Positions 2,103-32,550 of a stretch of 64,000 nt of DNA are shown here, one piece after another (the stretch's first letter is position 1; each line of letters starts with the position of its first letter). The position numbers and the translations under genes were made by a program. Under the pieces are notes generated by a model that searched no databases, had not been told where the DNA came from, and saw only the letters and a list, made by a program, of their open reading frames with translations. The stretch lies in the sequence record NC_061447.1. One strand, written 5' to 3'.

Positions 2103-3161
2103 CTACTTTCCTTTCTTCTCTATTGCTTTAGGTCGATTCCATCCAAGCGCTTTCGCTGGCATGATGCACTTCTTGCCGTGAATGTCTTTCAGTGTCATGC
2201 GAACTTCTTTGATCAACTTGAATGGTGCGTTATCTGGGTCGAGCTTAATCAGTTTACCTTCTTCATCAAACTCACGAGGCAGCTTGAAGTGTTTGACTGG
2301 TACTGGTGAGTTCTTCGCAAACTCTTCCTTGATCTTGGTACGAAGCAACTTCCCGCCACCGTCATTATCTGTCATGGTGTACACGACACTCACACCAAGC
2401 ATCTCAATCGTTCTGCGTTTCGTTTCACCAAACTGTTCTGCGCCAAGAACTGCCAGAGCAGGTATACCATACGATAACAGCGCGAGAGCATCACGAGGAC
2501 CTTCCACCAGCACAACGTAGCGCAGCTTGTATTTCTTCAAACACTCTTTGACTAATGGAAGTGGGAACAGGCCTTTGTCTTTTGCCCAATCACCTTGCGA
2601 GTTCACATAGCTGGTGCCGTTCATTTGCTTACGCAGATATGCAGCGATACCGCCTATGTATTTCGTTCCGTGTTTGCATGGGAAGAAACAAACGTTCGTC
2701 CCTGTGTGCTGTGCGTTAAGCAAACCACCAGCAGCACGAACAAGCGCTCCAGGATAACCGCGCCACTCAACATCAAGCGGCCACTCCATGTAGCTCTTAC
2801 GTCCAAGCGCTTTCATCAATAGACCAACTGATGGGTAAGTACCGATCTTCGAGCCTATCTGGTCATACGTTTTAAGCAGAGCACTAAGAGAGTTCGTGCC
2901 AGCATCTTTTAGCGCCCAGCCTTTGATCTCTTGTAGTCTCGCGTGTGCTGCGAGTTTGTTCCAGCCACCCTTCTCACCGCAGCCAAAGCAGTGAAAGAAT
3001 CCGAGCGGTATCTCCATCCCTACAGATGTGTAAATACCACAACTAGGAGTCTTATCGCTGTGGAACGGACAGCACACCATAACAGTGTCGCCGTTGTATT
3101 TCTTCTCGCCTGGCAGTTTGCCAATTTCATCGAGAATTATCTGATGGACATCTTCTGCCAT
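2103..3161 (-). CDS. DNA primase (DnaG-type: Zn finger + TOPRIM)
   Basis: CCPFHSDKTPSC...FHCFGC zinc finger; VLVEGPRDAL and DNDGGG TOPRIM motifs. Confidence 0.92.
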   Translation of the reverse strand: MAEDVHQIILDEIGKLPGEKKYNGDTVMVCCPFHSDKTPSCGIYTSVGMEIPLGFFHCFGCGEKGGWNKLAAHARLQEIKGWALKDAGTNSLSALLKTYDQIGSKIGTYPSVGLLMKALGRKSYMEWPLDVEWRGYPGALVRAAGGLLNAQHTGTNVCFFPCKHGTKYIGGIAAYLRKQMNGTSYVNSQGDWAKDKGLFPLPLVKECLKKYKLRYVVLVEGPRDALALLSYGIPALAVLGAEQFGETKRRTIEMLGVSVVYTMTDNDGGGKLLRTKIKEEFAKNSPVPVKHFKLPREFDEEGKLIKLDPDNAPFKLIKEVRMTLKDIHGKKCIMPAKALGWNRPKAIEKKGK

Positions 3162-3200
3162 ACCATCCTCTATTCGTTTCGTAATTTACGCATATAGCTA

Positions 3201-3209
3201 TATTTACAG
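3201..3209 (-). promoter_or_regulatory. CTGTAAATA motif upstream of primase (candidate phage-sigma promoter)
   Basis: Same motif precedes sigma (9581), SSB (10662, CTGTAAACA) and 22889 (22848) on +. Confidence 0.5.
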
Positions 3210-3225
3210 AAAAGGGACAATAAGA

Positions 3226-3561
3226 ATGGGTAATCCACATCGCTATGTACATAAAGCGGAACGTCGCTTTTATGATCGGCACTGGCTACAGTTTTGCGAT
3301 CTACTCAAAGTCGAACCTCAAACGTTAGGCGCGTTCAACAATCAGGGTGATATGATAGGCCTTACTTTGCCTGCCGCTACTGATATTGAGACAATGACCA
3401 GTAGTCTGCGCCTGATGTATTCTTTCAAGGAAGAAGGCGTTGAAGTACGCTGTTACCTGTTTGGTACTCGCTACTACAAGTTCGTTTTCTTTGAACAAAC
3501 AATTGCCGTAAGCGAGGATGACTATGAGAACGTTCGCAAACGTACCAGCGCGAGTCAATGA
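3226..3561 (+). CDS. hypothetical protein
   Basis: ORF divergent from primase, overlaps next gene. Confidence 0.7.
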   Translation: MGNPHRYVHKAERRFYDRHWLQFCDLLKVEPQTLGAFNNQGDMIGLTLPAATDIETMTSSLRLMYSFKEEGVEVRCYLFGTRYYKFVFFEQTIAVSEDDYENVRKRTSASQ

Positions 3562-4609
3562 TACTCGCGTGTTGTCGCGCATCGGCAAGATGATCGATGC
3601 TGCGCTTGACGTAAAGAACCAAGAGAAGCGCTGGCCGAAGAAACGCGTCAGCCCTTCAATGTTTCCTATCTGTGCGATTCAAGAAACGGCCAAGCTGATT
3701 TACCAGAAGCACAACAAGTGCATGACTGGTGAGTCTGGTACGTTGCTGAACATCTTTGCGAAAGCAGGGACAGGGATGCACGAATCGTTGCAGAATGCTC
3801 TGGGCCACAGTGGTCAGATGGTTGGTCACTGGAAGTGTACCAACGAGAAGTGCGTAGAGTACCCGAAGACCAAAGGCAAAATGGTTGACGGTAAGTACAA
3901 GAAAGGGAAGTACACGCGAACTAAAAGCACGAACAACCGCTGCCCATCTTGCGATCAACCTATGGCTTATGCAGAATTGAAAGTCCTGTACAAGTCACTC
4001 AAAGGTTACGTCGATGGACTGATTGATAATCTTGACGGCACATACAGTCTGATCGATTTGAAATCAACTATGGTCACTAAGGCCGCAGATGGTTCGTTCT
4101 TTGTTAAATACCATCGCTTTCAGATCGCGACCTACGCCTATCTTCTCAAAAAGCGTTATGGCTATAACATCGTGGACTACACTCTGGTGTACGTACCGCG
4201 TGACAACCCTAAAAAGTTTGTCGAGAAGACCTTTGTGTTTGACGAGGCAGAGTCAAAACGCGCAAAAGATTTTATGATGGAGCAAATACGCGCATGGGAT
4301 GCTGCGGTAAAATCGGCGCGCACGGGTGATCTGCTGCCAGCTATTAAACGTAAGCCGTGCAAGAGCGCTGAGTATTATTGGGACGAGTTCCACGGATATG
4401 ACACATGCCCTTTTGTTGACTATTGCTTTATTCAATCACACATGATTGACTTCATGAAGAAGTTAGAGCAGCGAATCATGGCCAACCCCGACCTGACATA
4501 TATGGAAATCGTAAGTACGGGTCGGAAAACTCAACAACAAGGTCTGCTGCCGGACAAGAAGCAGAAGTCTCAACGTCCGAAGCATATCGTAAAAACATTT
4601 GAGCTATGA
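3518..4609 (+). CDS. Cas4-like PD-(D/E)xK exonuclease
   Basis: SPSMFPIC, GTGMHE, GYVDGL, IDLKS, QIATY motifs; C-terminal Cys cluster (C...CPFVDYC); inserted C..C/CPSC Zn ribbon. Confidence 0.85.
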   Translation: MTMRTFANVPARVNDTRVLSRIGKMIDAALDVKNQEKRWPKKRVSPSMFPICAIQETAKLIYQKHNKCMTGESGTLLNIFAKAGTGMHESLQNALGHSGQMVGHWKCTNEKCVEYPKTKGKMVDGKYKKGKYTRTKSTNNRCPSCDQPMAYAELKVLYKSLKGYVDGLIDNLDGTYSLIDLKSTMVTKAADGSFFVKYHRFQIATYAYLLKKRYGYNIVDYTLVYVPRDNPKKFVEKTFVFDEAESKRAKDFMMEQIRAWDAAVKSARTGDLLPAIKRKPCKSAEYYWDEFHGYDTCPFVDYCFIQSHMIDFMKKLEQRIMANPDLTYMEIVSTGRKTQQQGLLPDKKQKSQRPKHIVKTFEL

Positions 4610-5016
4610 GCATACAAAAAGATTATGAACGATCATTGCGCCGACTTAAGGAGTCTGTCTATCGCACTGAACAGCTAGGTTATGTGGTGCCTCGCTGCAT
4701 CGACGTTATTCTCTCTAAGGTAAAGCCACCCGATCAAGTACAGTCACGTAAGTATCTGGTAATGCTGATGTTGGTCAGCCAGACCTGTGATAACCTGCGA
4801 TCGGCCTTGACCATGAGAGAACAACTGGTAGTTAAGATGGCTCTACTCAGTCGCAAGCATCCAACACCAGAGATTCAGCGTCGCATTAGACGCCTTGAAG
4901 AACTGGTTAATAGTCAAGACAAGAACATCGAAGGCCAGAGATTGCTACTGGACTACAGAGCAAATATCCTAACCGATATTCTCGACGGCAAAGAACCCAA
5001 CTCTCGATACACTTGA
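4606..5016 (+). CDS. hypothetical protein (coiled-coil)
   Basis: ATGA overlap with upstream gene. Confidence 0.75.
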   Translation: MSIQKDYERSLRRLKESVYRTEQLGYVVPRCIDVILSKVKPPDQVQSRKYLVMLMLVSQTCDNLRSALTMREQLVVKMALLSRKHPTPEIQRRIRRLEELVNSQDKNIEGQRLLLDYRANILTDILDGKEPNSRYT

Positions 5017-5023
5017 GGTAATC

Positions 5024-5500
5024 ATGGAAATTTATGTAAGCCTTAGTCAGGATAGCACGTACAAGAACCGCGCTCGCGTATCAAGCCCAGAGTCCACAAC
5101 TGGACGCACTGACCTGGCCGATTACGCTTCATTGGAGAAGAAGCTCCGTCTCACAGAAGAAGCCAAGGACAAAGAAAAACTAGCTCAAAAGGCTGGTGGC
5201 GGTGATTCTGTAAAGGGTAAGAAAGGCGCCAAGAAATCCGGCGAAACTAAACCCGAAGAAGACGATACTGACATTGATACCGACACTGATACAGATGGTG
5301 GTGACGATGAAACAGATGACGCTTCCGATGATACTGGAGACGACTCCGATGGAAAGTCTAAGACTAAGAAAGGTGGAAAGAAATCTGACACCTCTGGAGA
5401 TGCTGACGCAGAAGACGCAGAAGACCCTGACGCGGATGAATCCGAAGGTGATGACGGGGATGCAGATGCTGAAAGCATTGATGACGAGGACATCGAATAA
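5024..5500 (+). CDS. charged low-complexity protein with MEIYVSLS N-terminus
   Basis: GAGG RBS; K-rich and D-rich blocks. Confidence 0.8.
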   Translation: MEIYVSLSQDSTYKNRARVSSPESTTGRTDLADYASLEKKLRLTEEAKDKEKLAQKAGGGDSVKGKKGAKKSGETKPEEDDTDIDTDTDTDGGDDETDDASDDTGDDSDGKSKTKKGGKKSDTSGDADAEDAEDPDADESEGDDGDADAESIDDEDIE

Positions 5501-5534
5501 CGATCCCGTCGATGTGCCGAAAACGCATGATGCA

Positions 5535-5996
5535 ATGATCGAAGTCCTGATCGCCATTCGTTATATGTGCATGAAGCGAATGGTCTATCCTGTAGTCGCT
5601 GCAACAATCGAGCAGAGCAACAACTATCTGGTGATGAACAAAGCCTGTCTCCAGATGAAGCCTACGAAAGTCTATACTGCCCTGCAAGATCCAAACTGTG
5701 AAGTGAACTCGCGTTGGTTATTACGTGCATTCACGCGCACTGCCTTGCACTTCGATTTGTTGCCTGTGATAGCAGATAGGAGTGGCGACTTCCAGCCGTT
5801 AATCACTCGCTATTTCACACAGGATGATCCTGACTTCGCGTATCGTCGTCAGTACGACATTCGGAACCTGACCCAGCTTACTCAAATTCGTAAGCCGCGA
5901 ATGTATCTGCTTAATGGAGTTAATTATGGCGTACAAATCACTCGCCAAGAAACCGAAGAAGTCGAAAGCCGCCAAAGAGGCCGAGACTCGGAATAA
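5535..5996 (+). CDS. hypothetical protein (start re-assigned; GTG 5514 also possible)
   Basis: The track's 5274 start overlaps the real 5024 gene; only the part after 5500 looks like a natural protein. Confidence 0.65.
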   Translation: MIEVLIAIRYMCMKRMVYPVVAATIEQSNNYLVMNKACLQMKPTKVYTALQDPNCEVNSRWLLRAFTRTALHFDLLPVIADRSGDFQPLITRYFTQDDPDFAYRRQYDIRNLTQLTQIRKPRMYLLNGVNYGVQITRQETEEVESRQRGRDSE

Positions 5997-6582
5997 GGCA
6001 CACAAACAAGCGAAGCGTGGTAAGCTCGCGCAAGCTGTTAAAACTATCAGTGCTGCTACAGCCAAGTCTCGTCGCATGACCAAAGGTGAGAAACGCGCAA
6101 TTCAATTGCAGCCATTCAAGCCGCAAGTTGTACCTCAGCCACCGAAGACTCCTCTGATGGAAAAAGGTATGTCGCTTACTGCGCTGATGCGCTCGACACC
6201 TCGCCTGATGAAAGAGAACGCGATGGAGTGTTACGTTAACGGTGTGAAACGCGGTAAGACTAACAAAGGTCTGCCGATGATCATGGCTAACGTGCGACAC
6301 AAAGATCCACTGCGCCCTAATAAAACAGTGCGCATTCACAAGCCGATGATTATCGGTCTGGATGACCCGTTCAAGCCTATTTCAAAACAAAAGCGTGTAC
6401 TGGTCAGTTGTCCATGTGAGAACTTTGTTTTCATGTGGGAGTATGCGGACGCCGAACACGGCTGTGCGCGAATTATTTACGGCAACGGTGAGCCACCTGA
6501 CTTCACTAACCCAGGACATGCGCCTGGTTTGTGCAAGCACCTGATGGCTTTAGCCGATCAAGTCAAACGCAACGGAGATTAA
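5926..6582 (+). CDS. SWIM-type Zn-finger protein with basic N-terminus
   Basis: VSCPCENF...GLCKHLMAL (CxC-xn-CxH); GGAG RBS at 5916. Confidence 0.75.
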   Translation: MAYKSLAKKPKKSKAAKEAETRNKAHKQAKRGKLAQAVKTISAATAKSRRMTKGEKRAIQLQPFKPQVVPQPPKTPLMEKGMSLTALMRSTPRLMKENAMECYVNGVKRGKTNKGLPMIMANVRHKDPLRPNKTVRIHKPMIIGLDDPFKPISKQKRVLVSCPCENFVFMWEYADAEHGCARIIYGNGEPPDFTNPGHAPGLCKHLMALADQVKRNGD

Positions 6583-6587
6583 TCTCG

Positions 6588-6869
6588 ATGTTCTTTAAAA
6601 ATCCTGCGATGGGTGTTGTGCCCAGCCAGCCAATCATCCACTCGATTACAGAGATGCACCGTCGTGTTGCAGAACTGAATGGTGAACTGATCGCTGCTGG
6701 CTGTACTGTAGTTGAGAACTGCGGTGAGATGCTGATTGAAGTACCTGCTGGTGCATCTATCACTGTGGATGAAATCGTGCAGCGTCATATGGACATGTTC
6801 AAAGGTCCTATCGTCAGTCGTCCTGCTCGTTTGCAAATCGGAGGCGAAGATGCAGAAGCAGAAATTTAA
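6588..6869 (+). CDS. hypothetical protein
   Basis: GGAG RBS, co-directional packing. Confidence 0.65.
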   Translation: MFFKNPAMGVVPSQPIIHSITEMHRRVAELNGELIAAGCTVVENCGEMLIEVPAGASITVDEIVQRHMDMFKGPIVSRPARLQIGGEDAEAEI

Positions 6870-7281
6870 TCCTGCAATCAATAGTGTGTCGTTGCACTTT
6901 GGTCCGCACATCGTTCACGGACATGCAGAAGAAAGCGCGTTTGGCAAAGTGATGCAGAACATGTTGCTGCGCGAGATCAACAAAACATGCGGCGAGATGT
7001 TTGAGAAGATGGCTGGTACCCCTGCTGCCGCTCCTACATCATTCGATTTTTCTGAGGTAAAAGCCAGCAGCATTCTCGGGTCTGTCCAGCGCTGGCGTGA
7101 GATGATTGCCAGACAGGAACCAGTCAAGGAGTTCGAACCGTGCTCTGTGCCTGACTGGATGCGACCAGGTCTTCGAGCTAAAGGCATGACTGATGAACAG
7201 ATTGATAAGATCATTATCACTGCTGTCGAGCCTTCGTTTGAAGACGTTCCAGGCATTGTGTTGAGAACGGTGTCCTCCTAA
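6850..7281 (+). CDS. hypothetical protein
   Basis: GGAGG RBS before ATG 6850. Confidence 0.7.
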   Translation: MQKQKFNPAINSVSLHFGPHIVHGHAEESAFGKVMQNMLLREINKTCGEMFEKMAGTPAAAPTSFDFSEVKASSILGSVQRWREMIARQEPVKEFEPCSVPDWMRPGLRAKGMTDEQIDKIIITAVEPSFEDVPGIVLRTVSS

Positions 7282-7496
7282 TGGCATGTTCAGGTTGCGG
7301 CCGTCGTAGCACACGCATTAGCTATCACGGCGCTTCTGCTCCTCAAGTCGAAGTCGAAGAGGACGATACGTTAAGCGCTGCGCGTTTAACTCCAATGGGC
7401 TGGGTACGCACCTGCGTTAAGTGCGGGAAAGTGTCTGAGCCTTCACCATTTGCAGAAAACATCAATAAGCCATGTGACTGCACTTTAGACGAGTGA
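7281..7496 (+). CDS. small Cys-rich (Zn-binding?) protein
   Basis: CSGC, CVKC, CDC; TAATG coupling. Confidence 0.7.
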   Translation: MACSGCGRRSTRISYHGASAPQVEVEEDDTLSAARLTPMGWVRTCVKCGKVSEPSPFAENINKPCDCTLDE

Positions 7497-8227
7497 TCAT
7501 GATGAACAATCTCGTTGGCCTTGTGGCCGCTCTGGACCATTGTCGCTTCTATGCGGAGAATATGGTTCACATTCAATTCGGCAGTTCTCTTTGTGTTGTG
7601 CCTCCTGAGGCGCCATACAATCAACCAATCAATGAGCGACGTCTGCACTCATTGGCGGAAAGCATCGAGCTGGCATTCGACAATGCAATCAGCCGTACTG
7701 ATTTGGAATTTCCTATTCAGGGTATTCTCTATCGCTTCCGTTCTCTCTTTGGTCAGTACGTTGCGCAATATCGTGAAGATCTGTCGCGTGGTAACCCGTA
7801 CAAAGACAAGCAGGAAACTCTGACGCCCGCAGTTCCTGAGCGTCTTCCTGGCGAGCATGAGAAAGAGTTTGCATCGCGCTTCCTTAAGTATACCTCAGAC
7901 CAAGTTCAGGCATTTCTGTCTATGGTGTGTTTTGATCAGTATGCGCGTGAACAAACTGATTGTTGGTTGCCTGCTCCTGCTCCAGCGTTTGATCATCCTA
8001 CGAACACCTTCAATGAAAGCCCACTAGCGTTTACGACTACGCATAACGTTCTGGTCAATCATTTGATGGAAGCGATGTTGAAAACGTATAGCGACACGCT
8101 GGATATTCATGTATCGTTGCGCGACTACGGCGTGTCTGTATTATTCCCGCTGGTGGCTGAATGCCGTAACGTGATTTACGCTGCATGGCCTATCCCTAAC
8201 GCTAAAGGACAAAAACCAAATGTCTGA
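7493..8227 (+). CDS. hypothetical protein
   Basis: GTGA overlap, 244 aa. Confidence 0.75.
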   Translation: MIMMNNLVGLVAALDHCRFYAENMVHIQFGSSLCVVPPEAPYNQPINERRLHSLAESIELAFDNAISRTDLEFPIQGILYRFRSLFGQYVAQYREDLSRGNPYKDKQETLTPAVPERLPGEHEKEFASRFLKYTSDQVQAFLSMVCFDQYAREQTDCWLPAPAPAFDHPTNTFNESPLAFTTTHNVLVNHLMEAMLKTYSDTLDIHVSLRDYGVSVLFPLVAECRNVIYAAWPIPNAKGQKPNV

Positions 8228-8753
8228 TGTTATTCTGTTCGATAAACAAAATGAGTGGGAAGACTTCGGCAGCGCGGTCTACGAAGAATTTCGTCTGAAC
8301 GTAATGACGGGAAGTAGCAGTGCCAGCCAGATCCCAACTGTCGCACCGTTCGAAGACGTGAAGCACCAACTAAGCTATTCGAGCATTCTGCCTGAAGGTG
8401 AGCAGTCGCCTATCGTTGTGCTTGACATTCTTGTCATGGAAATCGATCTGGCTGAAGGTGAATCCAGCAGCTACAATGCAGACAGTCTGGACGAAGCTGT
8501 GCGTAAAGTTGTGGCACTGTACCAGGCTCGCGCTCGCGATCTTGACTGCCACCTGACAGGCAACTTCATCACAGCAGACCACAAAGTCAATGGTGCCCTG
8601 CTGCGTATCTATCGCAATCAGGACTTTGTGTGCAAAGGTCACCCTGAACTTCTGCACGGTAAACCGCTCGGTATGTTCCACTGCGACAAATGCGGTCAAC
8701 TGCAACAGGCTGGCTGCTTCCACTTGCCCAAAGAGGAAACTCAAAATGGTTAA
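8220..8753 (+). CDS. hypothetical protein with C-terminal Zn-ribbon-like motif
   Basis: C..H...HCDKCG...CFH. Confidence 0.7.
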   Translation: MSDVILFDKQNEWEDFGSAVYEEFRLNVMTGSSSASQIPTVAPFEDVKHQLSYSSILPEGEQSPIVVLDILVMEIDLAEGESSSYNADSLDEAVRKVVALYQARARDLDCHLTGNFITADHKVNGALLRIYRNQDFVCKGHPELLHGKPLGMFHCDKCGQLQQAGCFHLPKEETQNG

Positions 8754-9213
8754 AGGTGGCCTGTGGCGCGTCTTCCCTGACTATGATTCAGAGGAGATGC
8801 TGCTGAAACTCGGTGCTGCTATCGGCATCGACCGTGATAGCGATGATGTGCCAGAAGAATTGCACGTTACTCTGGCTTATGATGAAACCAATCCTGACGT
8901 TCAGGCTGAGCAAAACGATGCTGGTGAGTTCTTCGCTACCGTCGCTTCTGCTGAACTGTTCGGCGAAGGTCAAGATAAGATTCTGGTTCTCGTTCTCGAA
9001 TCACCTGACCTGTGTGCGGAGCATGAGCGCATTCACGCATGTGGTGCAGCGGAGTTTTGGCACTCGCCGTATCGCCCGCACGTCACGTTGCTGAAACACG
9101 CGAAAGACAGTCAGGCTGAATATCTCAATCAGATCATTCAGCACCCAGGACGCCCTCCAATTACTCTGCGCTTCATTGATGAAGACCGCAAGGTGCTGGA
9201 GAAGCGTAGCTAA
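8746..9213 (+). CDS. 2H phosphoesterase, T4 gp57B/Acb1 (anti-CBASS nuclease)-like
   Basis: Two HxT motifs (LHVTLAY, YRPHVTL) and LVLVLES.DL...H...GA block matching 57B/Acb1 as recalled; GAGG RBS. Confidence 0.8.
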   Translation: MVKGGLWRVFPDYDSEEMLLKLGAAIGIDRDSDDVPEELHVTLAYDETNPDVQAEQNDAGEFFATVASAELFGEGQDKILVLVLESPDLCAEHERIHACGAAEFWHSPYRPHVTLLKHAKDSQAEYLNQIIQHPGRPPITLRFIDEDRKVLEKRS

Positions 9214-9264
9214 AATCTAGCGGTGGCCTTGTGCTGCCGCTTTTGTCATTCTGGAGTAAATCCC

Positions 9265-9576
9265 ATGGAAATCTTTGTAAGCCTTTCACACGAGATTCGT
9301 GTTGATCGTCAGGACACGTCAGAGAAACAATTGCCTCTCGATGGCCAGCAACGCGCACTGGAGCAACAGGACCAGCAGCGCATCAAAGAAGAATATGGTA
9401 TCGACACACCCAAGGAAGAGATTGAGAAAAAGGAAAAAGAGCGCACTGAACGCGAACAGGAGCAGCGTGAAGAACAACGCACTAAACCACCAGCAGATTT
9501 AGGCCAGCGTAAGCCTGAGGCAGAACTAACTGGCTCCGAGATTCAAGATCAACACGATGACCTCACGAAGATCTAG
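9265..9576 (+). CDS. charged protein with MEIFVSLS N-terminus
   Basis: GGAG RBS at 9253; E/Q/K/R-rich. Confidence 0.75.
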   Translation: MEIFVSLSHEIRVDRQDTSEKQLPLDGQQRALEQQDQQRIKEEYGIDTPKEEIEKKEKERTEREQEQREEQRTKPPADLGQRKPEAELTGSEIQDQHDDLTKI

Positions 9577-9580
9577 GAAT

Positions 9581-9589
9581 CTGTAAATA
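9581..9589 (+). promoter_or_regulatory. CTGTAAATA motif upstream of sigma factor
   Basis: Intergenic, 32 nt before ATG 9622. Confidence 0.5.
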
Positions 9590-9621
9590 AGAGTCAAAGC
9601 AACTAACAGGTGTATTTGACC

Positions 9622-10659
9622 ATGAACAATAAGTCGAATCTCACAGGCGGTCAGATAGAAAGCGTCATGGACACCATGCTTCACGACTGCCTCCGTGAGA
9701 TTGTTGAGAACACGAACGTATTCGATGTGCAACTGACCTACCTGTTGAACATGATTACGTCGAATAAGAAGCGAAAGCCGTATAACGCAGAAACGCGTGA
9801 CCGTGCGATTAGCCTTCTGATTAAGGCGCTCTCTGTGCCTCGTGATCAGAAAATGATTTATATCCAGGAACTGAAAATGGAGCGCAACTTCATCTACGTC
9901 TTCCTGGAAAATGTAATTAAGCGATACTACGCGACGTATGTTGATCTCTATCGCGGATTCATTTCGACGCAAGACCCTATCAAGCGCGAAGCGTATTCGA
10001 AACGATTGAACGCATACGTGAAGATGTTTGGTGCAGAGTCTCGTTCCAAACTCTTTATCGCGTTGTGCCGTCTGAATGACCTTCTACCGCAGTTCATGGA
10101 ATACTTCCACTCGGTAGTTGCTGACTTCTATAGACTATGCAGCAAGCAAACAAAATTCTACGTTGATACGAACCGCGGTAAGCTGTACGACAGCAAAGAC
10201 GTGCGCCAGAACTTCCTGCGTAACGTCATCGTGGCTATCAACAAGTATGACTCGTCGCGTGGTGCGATTGTGAGTTATACGAAGTGGTGGATCTTGAACG
10301 CACAAACCTGTAGTAGTAGCGAGCATGAATACGGCATCGCGTACACTATTCCCCAGACTCAACGTAAGAAACTGGCTACAGGTGAAGATACCACTTCTCT
10401 GAATTTCTCGGTAAGTCTCGATACTTCTGCGAATGAATCTGATGAAGGTGCGGACGCGTCCCTACATCAAAAAGTGAGTGACCATCATCACTTAGAAGAT
10501 CACGTAGATAGTGAAAGACGTACCGAAAAACTGAGGCTGCTTATTAAGCGCGTAGACCCACTCGGCGTTGCTCGTCTAACGATGGACGTTGGTGAGGAGT
10601 TCGATAAATTCGAACTTGAACAGATGCGCAAACATATGCAGGCTCAAGGGCTAGCCTAA
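9622..10659 (+). CDS. phage sigma-70-like RNA polymerase sigma factor
   Basis: DVRQNFLRNVIVAINKYDSSRGAIVSYTKWWILNA resembles sigma70 regions 2.2-2.4; VSLD motif of region 3. Confidence 0.8.
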   Translation: MNNKSNLTGGQIESVMDTMLHDCLREIVENTNVFDVQLTYLLNMITSNKKRKPYNAETRDRAISLLIKALSVPRDQKMIYIQELKMERNFIYVFLENVIKRYYATYVDLYRGFISTQDPIKREAYSKRLNAYVKMFGAESRSKLFIALCRLNDLLPQFMEYFHSVVADFYRLCSKQTKFYVDTNRGKLYDSKDVRQNFLRNVIVAINKYDSSRGAIVSYTKWWILNAQTCSSSEHEYGIAYTIPQTQRKKLATGEDTTSLNFSVSLDTSANESDEGADASLHQKVSDHHHLEDHVDSERRTEKLRLLIKRVDPLGVARLTMDVGEEFDKFELEQMRKHMQAQGLA

Positions 10660-10709
10660 AACTGTAAACAATGCTCACACAAGAGCAAACTCAATATTGA
10701 GGAACAACA

Positions 10710-11954
10710 ATGGCACGTGGATTTGGTGACATTCAAGACAACAGCAAGCGCGATAGCTTGCGTGAGTCAGAGATCTTTGAAATCTTCCCTCTTTCGAAGA
10801 AAGCAAACGGCAACTGGGTATCAATTCGTCTGCTTGACCTTGACCTGCTTCCAATCAAGAAGCACTGGATCAAGATCATGGGCGGCAAAGATAAAGACAA
10901 AGAGATCAAAATCCCGCGCATGTGCGTTAGCTTCGACCCGGACAATCAGAACAAACCTCTGAACGGTATGAAGTGCCCGTACTGTGGTATCGCTCACGGT
11001 AACGACGAATCTGGTGCGCCGGCGCAGTACGACTATAAGTGGTACGCACAGGCAATCATTCGTGACGAGCAGGCTGCTGCACCGCGTAAAATGCCTAAGC
11101 TCACTAAGCAAGAGCAGAAGACAGGCAAGAAAGAAATGGGCAGTGAGTCTTGGACTCCTGTTATGTGTATTCCTCTGTCTAACTCTCTGGCAGGCAAAAT
11201 CCGCGAGCTGGGTGAACGTAACATTCACACAGTCAAAGATAAGAAGTCTGGCAAGAAGTCTAAGCAGGCGTTCCAGGTTAACCATCCGAAGTATGGCTGC
11301 GATATTGAAATCAAATACAACGCCAAAAAATCTCCGGCCGAGCGTTACACCATCGAACGTGGCGATCACACTCCGCTGACCGAAGAAGAAAAGGGCTACC
11401 TGACCTGGGACTTCGACAACTGGAACGAAATCTACGACATGCTGGGTCGTCTGGACGAAGCCGCCGCTATGGCAGACTTCAAAAAGATGGACGTTATCGG
11501 TGTCAACACCAACGATGATGGTGATGATGACGAAGACGATGACGACGATGACATGGCGCTGGGCCGCAAGAAGAAAGGCGGCAAGGCAGACAAGAAAAAA
11601 CGTCGCAACGATGACGATGATGACGACGAGGATGAAGATGACGACGATGACCGTCCATCCAAGTCCAAGAAGTCAAAAGCGTCTAAGTCTCGTAAGCTGT
11701 TAGACGATGACGAAGATGACGATGACGAAGACGATGATGACGATCGTCCTTCGAAAAAGAAAAAGTCCTCGAAGGTGAAGTCTAAGAAGTCTAAGAAGTC
11801 GGACGATGATGACGACGACGAAGACGATGCACCTAAGAAGAAGAAAAAGAAATCTTCTGACAAGGTGAAATCATCCGATAAGAAGAAGAAAAAGAAATCT
11901 TCTGATGACGATGATGACGACGCGCCGAAGAAGAAAAAGAAAAAGAAAAAGTAA
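10710..11954 (+). CDS. T4 gp32-like single-stranded DNA-binding protein with long D/K block tail
   Basis: IRLL..HWI..C...CPYC N-terminal pattern; directly upstream of RecA; long alternating acidic/basic tail. Confidence 0.7.
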   Translation: MARGFGDIQDNSKRDSLRESEIFEIFPLSKKANGNWVSIRLLDLDLLPIKKHWIKIMGGKDKDKEIKIPRMCVSFDPDNQNKPLNGMKCPYCGIAHGNDESGAPAQYDYKWYAQAIIRDEQAAAPRKMPKLTKQEQKTGKKEMGSESWTPVMCIPLSNSLAGKIRELGERNIHTVKDKKSGKKSKQAFQVNHPKYGCDIEIKYNAKKSPAERYTIERGDHTPLTEEEKGYLTWDFDNWNEIYDMLGRLDEAAAMADFKKMDVIGVNTNDDGDDDEDDDDDDMALGRKKKGGKADKKKRRNDDDDDDEDEDDDDDRPSKSKKSKASKSRKLLDDDEDDDDEDDDDDRPSKKKKSSKVKSKKSKKSDDDDDDEDDAPKKKKKKSSDKVKSSDKKKKKKSSDDDDDDAPKKKKKKKK

Positions 11955-11962
11955 TCGGTAAC

Positions 11963-11989
11963 GGGGTAGCTTAGGCTGCCCCTTCTTTT
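11963..11989 (+). terminator. intrinsic terminator
   Basis: GGGGTAGC-TTAG-GCTGCCCC + TTCTTTT. Confidence 0.85.
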
Positions 11990-12011
11990 CTCAATCTGGA
12001 CTATAGCACAA

Positions 12012-14531
12012 ATGGCTAAAGCGAAACGAATCAAGGCTGAAAAAGAAGCCGAAGGTAAAACCAAAGCCAAGAAAGGTAAAGCAGTCGCAGCCGATGATGT
12101 TGGCGGCGTAGAAGTCATGGGCTTTGACCTGGCTAGTTTGATGGACGATGTTCTTGATGGCATCGAAAAGAAAACGAAAGTAAGTTCGCAGGATGCAGCG
12201 CGTCACGCACCTCGTATCTCAACAGGCTGTCTCGCACTCGACATGTTCCTGTCTGGTGGCATTGTCCCTGGTGGCTGGTACACGTTTAGCGGCGGTGAGC
12301 AGTCGTGTAAGTCAACAATGACCATGAGTATTATGGCGAGCCTGATTCGTCTGCATTACTCTGGCATTAGCGTAGTGTTTGACTACGAAGGTTCAACCGA
12401 CGCAGAGTACGTTGCTGGTCAGTTGAAAACGTTCGGCGTTCGCGTTGACCCGAAAACTATCTTCGGTGTGCGTGATGACGAAGACGGTAGCTGGATCGTT
12501 AAGCCTAAGATCCGTTACTATGCCCCAGACAACGGTGAGCGCTTCTTCGATTATATGTCGATGCTGCGTCGTCGTCTGCCAGACAAGATCGTTGAGAAAG
12601 ACGGTACCGCGTATTACATCTTTGAGAACAACAAAGAGAACGCGAAGAAGCTGGCTGGTAAGTACGACAAGAAATGGTTTAGCCGTAACAACCAGTTCAA
12701 AGTACCTGCGCCAGACGGTCACATGCAGGCTATGGTTATCGTTGACTCCTATCCTGCAATGATGCCAGATCAGGTCGATGATGACGAAGGCTCGAAAGCA
12801 ATGGCGCTGCAAGCGCGTATGTTCTCTGACGGCATCAAACGTTTCCGTGGTGGTATGCGCCGTAAGATGATGACCATCGTTGGTGTTAACCAGTTGCGTC
12901 AGAAGCCTGCTGTTATGTTCGGTAGCCCTGAGTATGAGCCAGGTGGTGATGCGTTGAAGTTCTACTGCTTCGACCGCGATACTCTGATTCGTACTGATCA
13001 CGGCGTGCTGACTGCACCTCAGATCAAAGAGCTGATCGATGCTGGCAAGGAAGTCATGGTCGAATCGTTCGACGGCTTCCAGAAGATCAATGGCGCGTGG
13101 AAAGTTGATGACGCTCCGTTCCCAATCGAACTGAACGCTGGTGGACATGCGTATGTTGGTAGCGCTGAACACCGTCAGTTCACCTTCATGTATGACACGA
13201 CTGCTGATGGTATGGCTGTGCTGCGTCCTGAGTGGAACACGCTCAACCAGCTTGCTCAATATCCAGAGCAGAAAGGCCAGTATGCAGGTCTGCGTGTACC
13301 ACCTGTGAAAGAACTGAAAGCGAACGTGCCTGATGCGTTTGATGAAGCAAGCCAGCTCGTTAGCAATCTACTTGGCAACGCTGACTTCGTAAGCGTACAA
13401 CTGCCTCTGGCTGTTGCTGGTGATACCACGTTTGCTGCGAACGTACTGACTACCAATATGATTGGTGATCAGGATGATGTTCACACGTTCTCTTTGTGGG
13501 CACGTCACCTACTGTCTATCGGTATCTATGCTTACGCCGATGAAAGCGGTCTGCATATCCCAGGTCTGAACTATCACGAACTGCAAGCGGCTGTAACTCA
13601 GGATGAACTCGGTGCATTTGCTGGTATCAGCTTCGAAGCCACCAGCCGTCAACGTCAGACTCAGATGCTGACTGTGATTGCAGACGTGTTCCCTGAACTG
13701 ACCCGCTACGTGCTGGACTATCAGTTGCAGACAGGCCAGGATAAAATCTATCTGGCGCCAGAGCAGGACTTCGCACAGGCTCTCGACCTGATTCTGCATA
13801 AGCAGATTGAAGGTTACGATGACCAGTACGACCTGCTGATGCAGCAACTGGCGTACATCGACGACTGGTATAACTTCGATAACTCTATCGTTCCTGTTCC
13901 GTTCACGCTGAAAGCTCTGGTCAATCCTGTGGAGTTCTGGGATGTGAACGTCGAAGAAACGTCTGTTGTGATCACTAACGGTTTCGTTAGTCACAACTCT
14001 GACGTGCGTGTTCGTCTGGCTTCTCGTGCTGTGCCTCAGGGCTGGCCGACAATGAAAGACGCACCGGGTATCGTTGGTGAGAAGTCTGTAACTGTTGAAG
14101 GTGGTACCGACCGCTACCGTTTCATTGCAGCCAAGACCATCAAGAACAAGATGGGCGGCATCCCTAACCAGCAGACTTGGTTACGTCTGTGGGAAGCTGA
14201 CGGCAACGGTGAAGCGCGTGGCTTCGACCCAGTGTTCGATACGTGGCATTACCTGAAAACTCTCGGCCTGATCAACGGCACTCGTAAGAGCTTCAAGATC
14301 AAGGCGCCATGCCCGCTCGCATCTGACGTTAAGATGGACTGGGATGACTTCCGTACTCTTATCAACGGCAGCAAAGAGCAAGTTGTTGGCGTGTGTAAGA
14401 AACTGAAAGTCAAACCTGCTGGCCTGCGTCTGTGGTGCTTCAAGTTCGTGCAGTCTACCAAAGGCAACGAGATGTTGAAGAACGCTATCAGTAAGTCTGC
14501 GAAGACTTCTGATGACGATGACGACGAGTAA
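12012..14531 (+). CDS. recA: RecA/UvsX-like recombinase precursor containing an intein
   Basis: GGEQSCKST Walker A variant, VIVDS Walker B, QARMFS, VNQLRQK, GGDALKFY/SDVRV RecA motifs. Confidence 0.93.
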   Translation: MAKAKRIKAEKEAEGKTKAKKGKAVAADDVGGVEVMGFDLASLMDDVLDGIEKKTKVSSQDAARHAPRISTGCLALDMFLSGGIVPGGWYTFSGGEQSCKSTMTMSIMASLIRLHYSGISVVFDYEGSTDAEYVAGQLKTFGVRVDPKTIFGVRDDEDGSWIVKPKIRYYAPDNGERFFDYMSMLRRRLPDKIVEKDGTAYYIFENNKENAKKLAGKYDKKWFSRNNQFKVPAPDGHMQAMVIVDSYPAMMPDQVDDDEGSKAMALQARMFSDGIKRFRGGMRRKMMTIVGVNQLRQKPAVMFGSPEYEPGGDALKFYCFDRDTLIRTDHGVLTAPQIKELIDAGKEVMVESFDGFQKINGAWKVDDAPFPIELNAGGHAYVGSAEHRQFTFMYDTTADGMAVLRPEWNTLNQLAQYPEQKGQYAGLRVPPVKELKANVPDAFDEASQLVSNLLGNADFVSVQLPLAVAGDTTFAANVLTTNMIGDQDDVHTFSLWARHLLSIGIYAYADESGLHIPGLNYHELQAAVTQDELGAFAGISFEATSRQRQTQMLTVIADVFPELTRYVLDYQLQTGQDKIYLAPEQDFAQALDLILHKQIEGYDDQYDLLMQQLAYIDDWYNFDNSIVPVPFTLKALVNPVEFWDVNVEETSVVITNGFVSHNSDVRVRLASRAVPQGWPTMKDAPGIVGEKSVTVEGGTDRYRFIAAKTIKNKMGGIPNQQTWLRLWEADGNGEARGFDPVFDTWHYLKTLGLINGTRKSFKIKAPCPLASDVKMDWDDFRTLINGSKEQVVGVCKKLKVKPAGLRLWCFKFVQSTKGNEMLKNAISKSAKTSDDDDDE
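12966..13997 (+). mobile_element. intein (344 aa) in RecA with degenerate LAGLIDADG-like core
   Basis: Begins CFDRDTLIRT (block A) right after LKFY; SAEHRQF (block B-like); ends WDVNVEETSVVITNGFVSHN followed by Ser+1; removal restores LKFY-SDVRVRL. Confidence 0.92.
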
Positions 14532-29502: not shown

Positions 29503-29708
29503 ATAGAAAGATGATCGCCTGGTTCGCTTTGGTGATCTTCTGCGTGGTGGGAGTGGTTGCTTCCACCGTCGCACTCAATCACTACAGCTTCTTGTTGAGC
29601 ACGTTGCTCACAATCGTATTCGGCGTTGGCCTAGTTATCTGCGTGAAGTGCTTAGACGCGGCCACATGGGATTACTGCGTTAAGAAAGGAAAAGAAAAGA
29701 ATGGCTAA
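29499..29708 (+). CDS. small two-TM membrane protein
   Basis: Two hydrophobic stretches. Confidence 0.72.
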   Translation: MNRKMIAWFALVIFCVVGVVASTVALNHYSFLLSTLLTIVFGVGLVICVKCLDAATWDYCVKKGKEKNG

Positions 29709-30234
29709 ATCACTTGGTGTTTACCTGACGTATATCTTGCGCCATAAGCCACAAGATATCGGCATCGCAATGGACACTCAGGGTTGGGTGTCTGTGCATG
29801 ATCTGCTTGAGAAGGCTCGTTATGTAAAACCAGTCACTCTTGAATCGCTGACAGCCGAAGTGGAGTCAGACAACAAAGGCCGCTTCGAGTTCAACAAAAA
29901 CAAAACGCGCATCCGTTGTGTTCAGGGTCACTCGGTTGAGCATGTGCTTTTGAACATGCAGGCGTGGACAGACTGGTCGCCGTTATATCACGGTACGGCA
30001 GAAAAGAACATCTCGTCTATTCAACATGACGGCATCCTCAAGCGCAAACGCAAGCACGTCCATTTGAGCAACGATATCGAAACTGCTCGACGTGTTGGTC
30101 AACGTCACGGCGTACCTGTTGTGTTTCAGATCGACACGCTGTCCATGATTACTCACGGCTATAAGTTCTACCGTGCTGAGAACGGAGTCATCCTGACCGA
30201 GTACGTGCCGTCCCGTTATATCCGACTGGTGTAG
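29701..30234 (+). CDS. kptA: RNA 2'-phosphotransferase (Tpt1/KptA)
   Basis: LRHKP..IG..MD..GWV, DNKGRF, IRCVQGHS, LYHGT, RKHVHLS, RHG.PVV, NGVILT. Confidence 0.93.
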   Translation: MAKSLGVYLTYILRHKPQDIGIAMDTQGWVSVHDLLEKARYVKPVTLESLTAEVESDNKGRFEFNKNKTRIRCVQGHSVEHVLLNMQAWTDWSPLYHGTAEKNISSIQHDGILKRKRKHVHLSNDIETARRVGQRHGVPVVFQIDTLSMITHGYKFYRAENGVILTEYVPSRYIRLV

Positions 30235-31056: not shown

Positions 31057-32550
31057 ATGAAAAAGATTAAACACGCTTTCCGTCTGACCGACCTGGTTAA
31101 TATTGAAAAAGTCGATACCGTTGATTATTCCCAATTGCATCACGGTAAACGTGCTATCATTGTTGGTCGTGAGCTTGACTGTCAAATGTACGATCTTCAC
31201 ATCGAAGGTGTTGGCGTTCATCACATGCAATACCCAGAAGAATGTTTGTCGCTCATTAAGCGCAATCAGGGTGAGATGCTCGACAAGTGGGAAGCTGGTA
31301 AGTACGGCAAGAAGAAAAAGAAAGAGCGCGAGATCCCTAACGTGCTGCGTAACTTCACTGCTATTCTGCCTGTGACCTGCAACGCCGATTGTTCGTTCTG
31401 TCCTGAGAAGGAGATGGAAAACAAGGCGCCTCAGAAAGAGTGGCAAGACAAACTGATTGCTGCGATTAAGACGCACGGGCATCGCGTTGACCACGTATCA
31501 ATCTCAGGCGGCGAACCTACGCTGCGTATGAAGTACCTGTTCGAAACGATCGACCAGATTCAGACCAAAGCACATATGTATAAAGTCGGTCTGACGTCGA
31601 ACGGTCAGTTCCTTGAGAAACCTAATCAGTTGCTGACGTTCCTCGACCTGAACACCAACGAGATGTTGGAAAGCAAACTGTCGCATCTGAATATCAGTAT
31701 GCACTCGTTCGACCGCGAAAAAGCAAACAAGATCATGGGCGTCAACTATACGTGGACTCTCGAAGACCTTGCTCGCTTCCGCCGTCAGTTAGGCCGCAAG
31801 CTGAGTTTCCACATCAACTTTGTTATCAACGAACAGAACATTGATAACATCGAGTGGGAGTTCCGTCAGGCCAACGAGTTCATGAAAGAGAATCAGTGGA
31901 TTGACGTTGTGTTCCGTGTTGACTACAACAACAAAAAGCTGAACAAAGAACTGCGTAAGTATGGTCTGGCTGTACAGGCAGCGCGTGAAGCAAAACGACC
32001 ACGTGATAAGAGCATCAAATACTTAGCGCCTAAGATCAAGGAGCCTAAGCTGATCGAGTTGTTTAACTCTATCTTCGACGGTAGCTTCTACGATGATTTG
32101 ACCGAAGAGACTATGCCTGGACTTGGCGATACGTTTACAACCGCATGTCCGTCCTGCTTCACGCATCGTAGCACAGACCTCGGTAACAGCTTCGCATACC
32201 TGAAAGCGTCTTCATACGAACCGAACGAAGACGAAGAAGAATATACCGAGATGGTATTCCACATGGACGGCAACTTGTACTTCGACTGGTCACGCAAAGA
32301 GCCTGTGCCGGAAATGAAGGCGAAGACTAAAAAGACGAAGCGTTTCGACTTCGAGTTCGAGCAAAAAGGCGAACATGATGCACCTAACGGTGCTGCGCTT
32401 AAACTTGAACAGGGCAAGAAAGCCAAACCTGTCCGCGTTAAGAAGGCCAAGAAGACTGAGCCACAGGGCTACCCAGATAGCTGCAACTATTCTTCTCCGT
32501 GCAGTTACTCGCGTGGTTCGTCTTGCAATTTCGGCAGCGGCATGTGCTAA
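31057..32550 (+). CDS. radical SAM enzyme with C-terminal Cys/Ser/Gly-rich tail
   Basis: CNADCSFC (CxxxCxxC), ISGGEPT, LTSNG, NISMHS; tail DSCNYSSPCSYSRGSSCNFGSGMC. Confidence 0.88.
   Translation: MKKIKHAFRLTDLVNIEKVDTVDYSQLHHGKRAIIVGRELDCQMYDLHIEGVGVHHMQYPEECLSLIKRNQGEMLDKWEAGKYGKKKKKEREIPNVLRNFTAILPVTCNADCSFCPEKEMENKAPQKEWQDKLIAAIKTHGHRVDHVSISGGEPTLRMKYLFETIDQIQTKAHMYKVGLTSNGQFLEKPNQLLTFLDLNTNEMLESKLSHLNISMHSFDREKANKIMGVNYTWTLEDLARFRRQLGRKLSFHINFVINEQNIDNIEWEFRQANEFMKENQWIDVVFRVDYNNKKLNKELRKYGLAVQAAREAKRPRDKSIKYLAPKIKEPKLIELFNSIFDGSFYDDLTEETMPGLGDTFTTACPSCFTHRSTDLGNSFAYLKASSYEPNEDEEEYTEMVFHMDGNLYFDWSRKEPVPEMKAKTKKTKRFDFEFEQKGEHDAPNGAALKLEQGKKAKPVRVKKAKKTEPQGYPDSCNYSSPCSYSRGSSCNFGSGMC

Follow-up and report, generated by a model that had tools for sequence, protein, structure and literature searches.

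Does the small gene at positions 8746-9213 of the 64-kb stretch of DNA analyzed here (hereafter the window) encode a phage enzyme that destroys the cyclic nucleotide messengers of host immunity, and how far does it resemble Acb1, the anti-CBASS protein encoded by gene 57B of phage T4? By megablast, the window is identical to record positions 186001-250000 of Erwinia phage pEa_SNUABM_33 (MZ443779.1 / NC_061447.1), a 263-kb Alexandravirus whose host is Erwinia amylovora. The reading frame that the first-pass annotation had picked out for its two HxT motifs coincides exactly with an annotated gene, MPK70_gp239 (here gp239), which runs from an ATG at 8746 to a TAA stop codon at 9211-9213.

A Misnamed Gene in an Erwinia Phage

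The product of gp239 is called "RNA ligase" in RefSeq and "hypothetical protein" in GenBank, and the orthologue in Dickeya phage AD1 (97% identical) is annotated as "putative cyclic phosphodiesterase." The RefSeq label originates from PHROG 755, which matches gp239 at 1.6e-29. An ATP-dependent RNA ligase was considered and rejected, as the protein has no nucleotidyltransferase ligase domain and matches only members of the 2H superfamily; the family assignment given below corrects this misleading name. The gene and its immediate surroundings comprise the following features.

8220-8753, plus strand: gp238, the conserved upstream neighbor (PHROG 29033, without assigned function), adjacent to gp239 in four named genera
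8733-8737, plus strand: Shine-Dalgarno-like GAGGA, 8 nt upstream of the gp239 ATG
8746-9213, plus strand: gp239 (MPK70_gp239, YP_010302021.1), 155 aa, Acb1-family 2H phosphodiesterase
9219-9252, plus strand: terminator-like hairpin with a T-rich tail (9-bp stem, 9219-9241), directly 3' of the gp239 stop codon

A GAGGA-type motif also precedes the start of the orthologues in AD1, SNUABM_17, SNUABM_30, and Y3. The start of gp239 overlaps the end of gp238 (stop codon 8751-8753), which suggests translational coupling of the two genes. In the window the frame of gp239 is open upstream as far as 8590. The annotated start nevertheless stands because the orthologues have in-frame stop codons shortly upstream of it, 9 codons away in JA33 and 31 codons away in Alexandra, and these stops rule out a conserved N-terminal extension. 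Eight phages from four genera carry an intact copy, and the dN/dS values are 0.07-0.16. Thus, gp239 is a real gene under purifying selection.

Assignment to the Acb1 Family

The Pfam model Acb1 (PF23474) was the best-scoring family on gp239, at 45.7 bits against a curated cutoff of 27 (E 6.9e-12). The generic 2'-5' RNA ligase and LigT Pfam models scored the protein under their own thresholds (18.7 against 23.3 bits for PF02834, with PF13563 also below its curated threshold), and the NCBIfam equivalog for RNA 2',3'-cyclic phosphodiesterases (TIGR02258) gave 23.5 bits where 65.7 are required. The LigT-type RNA 2',3'-cyclic phosphodiesterase that had been offered as an alternative at first reading therefore finds no support at any curated threshold.

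Profile comparisons pointed the same way. A profile built from 12 close relatives found the Acb1 structure 7T26 of Erwinia phage FBB1 at E 2.2e-13, and an exhaustive search with it yielded 1,836 cluster representatives. All 104 sampled relatives, comprising 98 of these representatives and six closer homologues, match PF23474. Among solved structures, a deeper profile of the gp239 family recovered FBB1 Acb1 at E 9.3e-30 and PDE-9 of Burkholderia phage BCSR5 at E 2.6e-23, with LigT proteins at E > 0.1 and the Arabidopsis structure 1fsi at E 0.0045.

The T4-type and FBB1 comparators were reached, as named hits, via a bridging relative (P0016) in a phage collection. They are the T4-type orthologue of T4_ev151 (L007:2986-3444) and FBB1 Acb1 (L006:2992-3450), both encoded after dNMP kinase and 57A; nine of the nine residue numbers given by Hobbs et al. 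(2022) fit the T4-type protein used. BLASTP aligned gp239 to the T4 type with 34% identity over 89 aa and to FBB1 Acb1 with 31% over 81 aa, and hhalign matched the gp239 family to 23 proteins with a C-terminal Trp (T4/FBB1 type) at 99.96% (E 4.5e-39, 164 columns). These results bear out the likeness to T4 gp57B that the first-pass annotation had proposed.

The residues expected to carry catalysis are encoded as follows.

8863-8871, plus strand: first His-x-Thr (H40 and T42; residues 40-42), equivalent to H44/T46 of T4 Acb1
9079-9087, plus strand: second His-x-Thr (H112 and T114; residues 112-114), equivalent to H113/T115 of T4 Acb1

His-x-Thr occurs exactly twice in gp239, the two copies lying about 70 residues apart. 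The motif count is weak evidence by itself, because 9% of shuffled versions of the protein also have at least two His-x-Thr/Ser motifs. Conservation of the motifs is near complete in a MAFFT alignment of 109 family members: the first has His in 109/109 and Thr in 108/109, and the second has His in 109/109, followed by Thr in 86 and Ser in 23. The putative catalytic tetrad of gp239 is intact.

As a phage-encoded, single-domain protein of 155 aa, gp239 is within the size range of the Acb1 family (~140-170 aa), to which it belongs in the broad sense defined by PF23474. This assignment is right but not new, being present in UniProt names and in DefenseFinder output. The orthologues of pEa_SNUABM_2 (in UniRef) and JA29 (in UniProt) are named "Anti-CBASS protein Acb1," and a DefenseFinder survey from 2026 reported acb1 in 61 Erwinia phage genomes (PMC13480210). 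The same survey found acb1 and CBASS type I to be positively correlated (PMC13480210).

Predicted Fold

An AlphaFold model of gp239 (pLDDT 87.1, pTM 0.82) has the fold predicted for the 2H family. When the model was compared with the PDB by Foldseek, the top matches were the BCSR5 structures 9q2y and 9q2g (TM 0.76-0.78, over 156-159 columns), followed by FBB1 Acb1 (7t26/7t27; TM 0.61-0.68). The comparison with Acb1 structures that had been suggested as a check thus places FBB1 Acb1 among the top folds, behind the BCSR5 enzyme. Both of these best-matching phage enzymes cleave 3'3'-cGAMP (PMC9117128; 10.1101/2025.08.21.671373). Lower matches included the Arabidopsis ADP-ribose cyclic phosphate phosphodiesterase, Usb1, LigT, and the penguinpox cGAMP phosphodiesterase; the Arabidopsis structures 1jh6/1fsi were the best non-phage match (E 3e-5, TM 0.64/0.56). 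In BFVD, a library of viral models, the best fold was that of the JA29 orthologue. Acb1 is accordingly the best family for gp239 by sequence, profile, and fold, as the first reading of an Acb1/gp57B-like 2H phosphoesterase had it.

Lids and Base-Contacting Residues

We then compared gp239 with T4 Acb1 at the positions that contact the nucleotide, using a residue register on which MAFFT (109 sequences) and hhalign agree.

8761-8763, plus strand: Leu6, in the column of base-stacking Tyr12 of T4 Acb1
8959-8961, plus strand: Phe72, in the column of base-stacking Trp74 of T4 Acb1; the aromatic is retained
9061-9063, plus strand: His106, in the column of base-stacking Phe107 of T4 Acb1
9106-9153, plus strand: residues 121-136, a helix (121-131 in the model) and a Pro-rich loop, gapped in T4/FBB1
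9190-9192, plus strand: Lys149, in the column of Glu141 of T4 Acb1, which reads adenine N6
9208-9210, plus strand: Ser155, the last residue, aligned with the lid residue Trp147 of T4 Acb1

Of the five residues with which T4 Acb1 contacts the nucleotide, three are replaced in gp239 and a fourth (Trp147) is missing. Leu6 adjoins Trp7, which is invariant. The Tyr12 column holds Tyr or Phe in 101/109 family members, and the Phe107 column holds Phe, Tyr, or Trp in 101/109 and His in 7/109. Within the lineage, His occupies the latter in Alexandravirus and Phe in Y3, Yoloswag, and JA33. The Trp74 column is Phe in 59/109 and Trp in 18/109, and FBB1 Acb1 also has Phe there. Glu is found in the Glu141 column in 54/109. 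Leu6 and Lys149 are common to all Alexandravirus orthologues examined and to Sasquatchvirus Y3, and the equivalents of Tyr12 and Glu141 stay Tyr and Glu in Yoloswagvirus (Yoloswag) and Salmondvirus (JA33). On this distribution, Alexandravirus and Sasquatchvirus carry the Leu/Lys pair as a derived state.

Neither of the two known lids was found in gp239. In both MAFFT and hhalign alignments the protein stops at the Trp147 column, leaving no C-terminal lid, and just 5 residues stand before the Tyr12 column and first strand, leaving no N-terminal lid of the PDE-9 type. Among the 109 sequences, a sample biased toward relatives of the query, the C-terminal Trp is found in 23, a long N-terminus in 38, and neither feature in 28. 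The interval from the second His to the Glu141-equivalent column is 36 residues in gp239 against 27 in T4/FBB1 (9 longer), and this extra stretch, with helix 121-131, aligns to BCSR5 PDE-9 (9q2g). On these alignments gp239 is not placed in the lid-bearing T4/FBB1 subgroup, whose defining contacts it lacks.

Published work on related enzymes gives these differences their weight. Glu141 of T4 Acb1 reads adenine N6, which explains the adenine requirement of that enzyme (PMC9117128; PMC13577500). T4 Acb1 without its lid stops triggering Panoptes, and the lid was considered by the authors to be needed for catalysis, yet lid-deleted PDE-9 still cleaves 3'3'-cGAMP (10.1101/2025.08.21.671373). According to the same study, messenger specificity sits in the enzyme core and varies among members of the Acb1 structural group itself, and two structural groups of viral 2H enzymes cut 0 of 18 messengers tested (10.1101/2025.08.21.671373). 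The enzymes tested in that preprint include no member of the lid-less subgroup and no Alexandra-like protein (10.1101/2025.08.21.671373).

Since gp239 has no lid and carries the Leu, His, and Lys replacements, its substrate range probably differs from that of T4 Acb1. It is possible, if on the doubtful side, that Alexandravirus and Sasquatchvirus represent a derived, lid-less Acb1 branch in which the Glu-to-Lys and Tyr-to-Leu changes shift or narrow the set of messengers cleaved. If so, this branch could drop the adenine requirement, or could spare decoy messengers that trap broad-range Acb1. Its enzymes might also travel inside the virion and be at work as soon as infection begins, as with the homologue CBB_118 of Pectobacterium phage CBB. 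Roughly one in four of the sampled relatives is lid-less, and this form, along with the Glu-to-Lys change, provides a natural comparison for studying messenger specificity in viral 2H enzymes.

Genomic Context

The order of genes around gp239 is a PD-(D/E)XK nuclease, small unknown genes, gp238, gp239, a small gene, and then sigma-like, SSB, and RecA/UvsX-like genes. The position of gp239 does not vary among four named genera, and its two nearest metagenomic relatives keep the surrounding gene order. The small ORFs upstream of gp239 other than gp238 had no Pfam hits.

For gp238, no Pfam match was found, homologues occur only in the phage lineage of gp239, and an AlphaFold model (pLDDT 74.6) resembled no PDB structure at E < 0.001. 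The idea of an anti-defense island therefore gains no support from gp238, whose PHROG is of unknown function.

The hairpin after gp239 folds at -14 kcal/mol with a z-score of -1.33, so that its stability alone is not significant. Its stem is invariant, with a variable loop and diverging flanks, in AD1, SNUABM_17, SNUABM_30, Alexandra, Y3, and Yoloswag (three genera), and the hairpin is absent after the JA33 orthologue. The support for a terminator comes from this conservation and not from stability. Because the conserved hairpin lies directly 3' of the gene, gp239 probably closes a transcription unit and is not inside the sigma/SSB/RecA unit. An Rfam search of positions 3000-13000 found nothing, and a scan for sigma-70 promoters was uninformative, giving fewer matches than in shuffled sequence.

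The first-pass annotation had called the location unusual, inside a core replication and transcription block. That description does not hold: the position is fixed across the four genera, the gene ends a small-gene run before the hairpin, and T4 acb1 itself adjoins dNMP kinase. Neighbors in DNA or nucleotide metabolism are common to gp239 and to T4/FBB1 acb1.

A Probable Anti-signaling Phosphodiesterase

We hold with moderate confidence that gp239 is an Acb1-family 2H phosphodiesterase that destroys CBASS-type immune messengers (cyclic di- or trinucleotides) of the host, and this is the most likely function among those considered. We infer its catalytic activity, the messenger that it cuts, and the protection that it would give the phage. 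The protein would be made from the last cistron of the small-gene run and would be an active, metal-independent 2H phosphodiesterase. Its two His-x-Thr motifs would provide acid-base catalysis, by a chemistry taken over from T4 and FBB1 Acb1: attack of the ribose 2'-OH on the neighboring 3'-5' phosphodiester would yield an intermediate with a 2',3'-cyclic phosphate, from which the linear product would form. With the cyclic di- or trinucleotide signal destroyed, the CBASS effector would never be switched on.

The points counted for an anti-signaling role were the score above the PF23474 threshold, the profile and fold matches to FBB1 Acb1 and PDE-9, the invariant tetrad, the aromatic at the Trp74 position, the dN/dS values and intact orthologues, the cleavage of 3'3'-cGAMP by lid-deleted PDE-9, the neighbors of the CBB homologue, and the correlation of acb1 with CBASS type I. 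Counted against it were the absence of both lids, the replacement of three of five contacts, the inactivity of some viral 2H groups on 18 messengers, the absence of lid-less members from the tested enzymes, and the Tpt1 of the same phage, along with the standing of gp239 as a fixed core gene of its lineage and not part of a variable island.

It is unlikely, in our judgment, that gp239 instead serves RNA or ADP-ribose metabolism as a housekeeping cyclic phosphodiesterase, working in the pathway of the phage's own Tpt1/KptA. It could do so in two ways, by opening 2',3'-cyclic phosphate RNA ends or by hydrolyzing ADP-ribose 1''-2''-cyclic phosphate, the by-product of Tpt1. In fungal and plant tRNA ligation, 2H enzymes act before Tpt1 and on the Tpt1 by-product, which is hydrolyzed by the plant and yeast 2H CPDases.

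29701-30234 of the window: Tpt1/KptA RNA 2'-phosphotransferase (PF01885, 152.6 bits)

Tpt1 is present throughout the Alexandra-like phages, as this reading would expect, but it lies 20 kb from gp239 in another gene run and the co-occurrence is not strict: CBB has the 2H gene without a match to Tpt1, and in Ea35-70-like phages Tpt1 occurs without a match to gp239. Phage records matching the Acb1-family relative P0016 number more than 1,300, against 98 for the window Tpt1. The Arabidopsis structures 1jh6/1fsi are the best fold after the phage enzymes and the family profile does reach 1fsi (E 0.0045); that profile nonetheless favors Acb1 by more than 25 orders of magnitude, and the dedicated models TIGR02258 (23.5 against 65.7 bits) and PF02834 (18.7 against 23.3 bits) fall short. 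A housekeeping role would also suit a fixed core gene with a dN/dS of about 0.1, a protein without a lid or the adenine-reading Glu, and the names "putative cyclic phosphodiesterase" or "RNA ligase" chosen by annotators. Against this, the annotation of the 263-kb genome contains no ATP-dependent RNA ligase or polynucleotide kinase, gp239 alone being labeled "RNA ligase."

Rather improbable, too, is that gp239 is an active viral 2H phosphodiesterase with a substrate other than the adenine-containing CBASS signals cut by T4 Acb1, for example one with a different linkage or base, or the signal of another defense system. The label "anti-CBASS" would then be wrong and the family right. Such a shift is suggested by the replacements of Glu141 by Lys, Tyr12 by Leu, and Phe107 by His in a protein without a lid, by the derived state of the Leu/Lys pair in Alexandravirus and Sasquatchvirus (Tyr/Glu in the sister genera), and by the finding that substrate range follows the enzyme core, with two groups inactive on 18 messengers (10.1101/2025.08.21.671373). 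On the other hand, 3'3'-cGAMP is cleaved by both of the enzymes nearest in solved fold, the variability of the Glu141 column (Glu in 54/109) means that it may not decide substrate class, and nothing observed points positively to an alternative substrate. Finally, a chance ORF or inactive relic, conceivable from two short motifs that 9% of shuffles reproduce, is refuted by the conservation data and has next to no probability, the gene being annotated in all relatives, intact in eight phages (dN/dS 0.07-0.16), invariant in its tetrad, flanked by a Shine-Dalgarno motif and a conserved hairpin, and matched to its family at E-values of 1e-12 to 1e-39.

The predicted anti-signaling enzyme is located in Alexandra-like jumbo phages, which are used in phage cocktails against fire blight. 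[quoted passage not shown] A paper on phage PaBG makes no mention of that phage's 2H gene.

Comparison with Known Systems

T4 Acb1 (gene 57B, NP_049750.1) and FBB1 Acb1 (7T26/7T27) share with gp239 the PF23474 family, the 2H fold, the His-x-Thr tetrad, an aromatic at the Trp74 position, and the form of a single-domain phage protein of ~150 aa. They differ in that identity to gp239 is only 31-34% over the central 80-90 residues, and in that gp239 is without the C-terminal lid and has Leu, His, and Lys in place of Tyr12, Phe107, and Glu141.

The 2H enzyme PDE-9 of Burkholderia phage BCSR5 (9Q2G/9Q2Y) resembles gp239 in its longer second lobe and is the best structural match, at 20-23% sequence identity. 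PDE-9 has an N-terminal lid of ~15 residues, whereas gp239 has 5 residues before the first strand. PDE-9 cleaves 3'3'-cGAMP and largely spares 2'3'-c-di-AMP (10.1101/2025.08.21.671373).

The LigT/ThpR proteins and the plant and yeast CPDases (5LDI, 1FSI/1JH6) have in common with gp239 the 2H superfamily, the tetrad, and 2',3'-cyclic phosphate chemistry. They are more distant in fold (TM 0.48-0.64, rmsd 4-8 Å) and in profile comparisons, with E-values from 0.0045 to > 0.1 against 1e-30 for Acb1.

CBB_118 is, like gp239, a lid-less Acb1-family homologue (27% identity), and CBB, like the window phage, is a jumbo phage of a plant-pathogenic enterobacterium. The neighbors of CBB_118 are NAD-salvage, Sir2, and Nudix genes, whereas gp239 is in a nuclease/sigma/SSB/RecA region. 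Purified virions contained CBB_118, at a peptide coverage of 60% (PMC5259590).

The annotation and gene neighbourhood of gp239

The RefSeq product name "RNA ligase", carried by gp239 (NC_061447.1; window 8746-9213) and its RefSeq orthologues, is inherited from the label of PHROG 755, and it is misleading because gp239 contains no ligase domain. The gene immediately upstream, gp238, adjoins the Acb1-like gene in every case and overlaps its start:

8220-8753, + strand, gp238

A Cys/His cluster near the gp238 C-terminus is invariant, and the confident part of its predicted structure is a two-sheet core. A Pfam search with gp238 returned no match, nor did its predicted fold match any among solved structures. 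In Erwinia phage Yoloswag, the run of small genes 5' of the Acb1-like gene includes an additional gene:

L003 (Yoloswag locus) 3175-3708, gp231, labelled "phosphoesterase", with a weak, below-threshold calcineurin-like match

Other genes in the window

Three further genes in the window are of note:

12012-14531, + strand, RecA/UvsX-like protein (839 aa), with the RecA match in two separate stretches
29701-30234, + strand, Tpt1/KptA RNA 2'-phosphotransferase (PF01885, 152.6 bits)
31057-32550, + strand, radical SAM protein (497 aa; PF04055 at 52 bits, with an additional 4Fe-4S cluster domain), just 3' of the Tpt1 gene

The split RecA match, the shorter JA33 orthologue (501 aa versus 839 aa) and the intein splicing domain present in a metagenomic relative (L018, from 9290) together suggest that the RecA/UvsX-like gene of the window may contain an intein or other large insert. 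Matches to the window Tpt1 were detected by tblastn in 98 phage records, the majority of them Erwinia and Dickeya jumbo phages. Mislabelled gp239 aside, the genome annotation of the Tpt1-bearing phage pEa_SNUABM_33 lists no RNA ligase.

2H phosphodiesterases and virions

Pectobacterium phage CBB encodes a lid-less Acb1-family homologue whose neighbours are NAD-salvage, Sir2 and Nudix genes:

L005 5001-5447, equivalently L017 301-747 (both CBB loci), CBB_118

CsCl-purified CBB virions contain CBB_118 (7 peptides, 60.4% coverage; PMC5259590), and this hints that the protein is delivered together with the phage DNA. The Acb1-family profile also matched residues 482-593, in the C-terminal part of the cyanophage Pam3 portal protein (PDB 8hds_A; E 1e-11), and the 2H fold occurs within several large "structural" proteins of the viral model library. 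Thus, 2H phosphodiesterase domains may also be fused to virion proteins.
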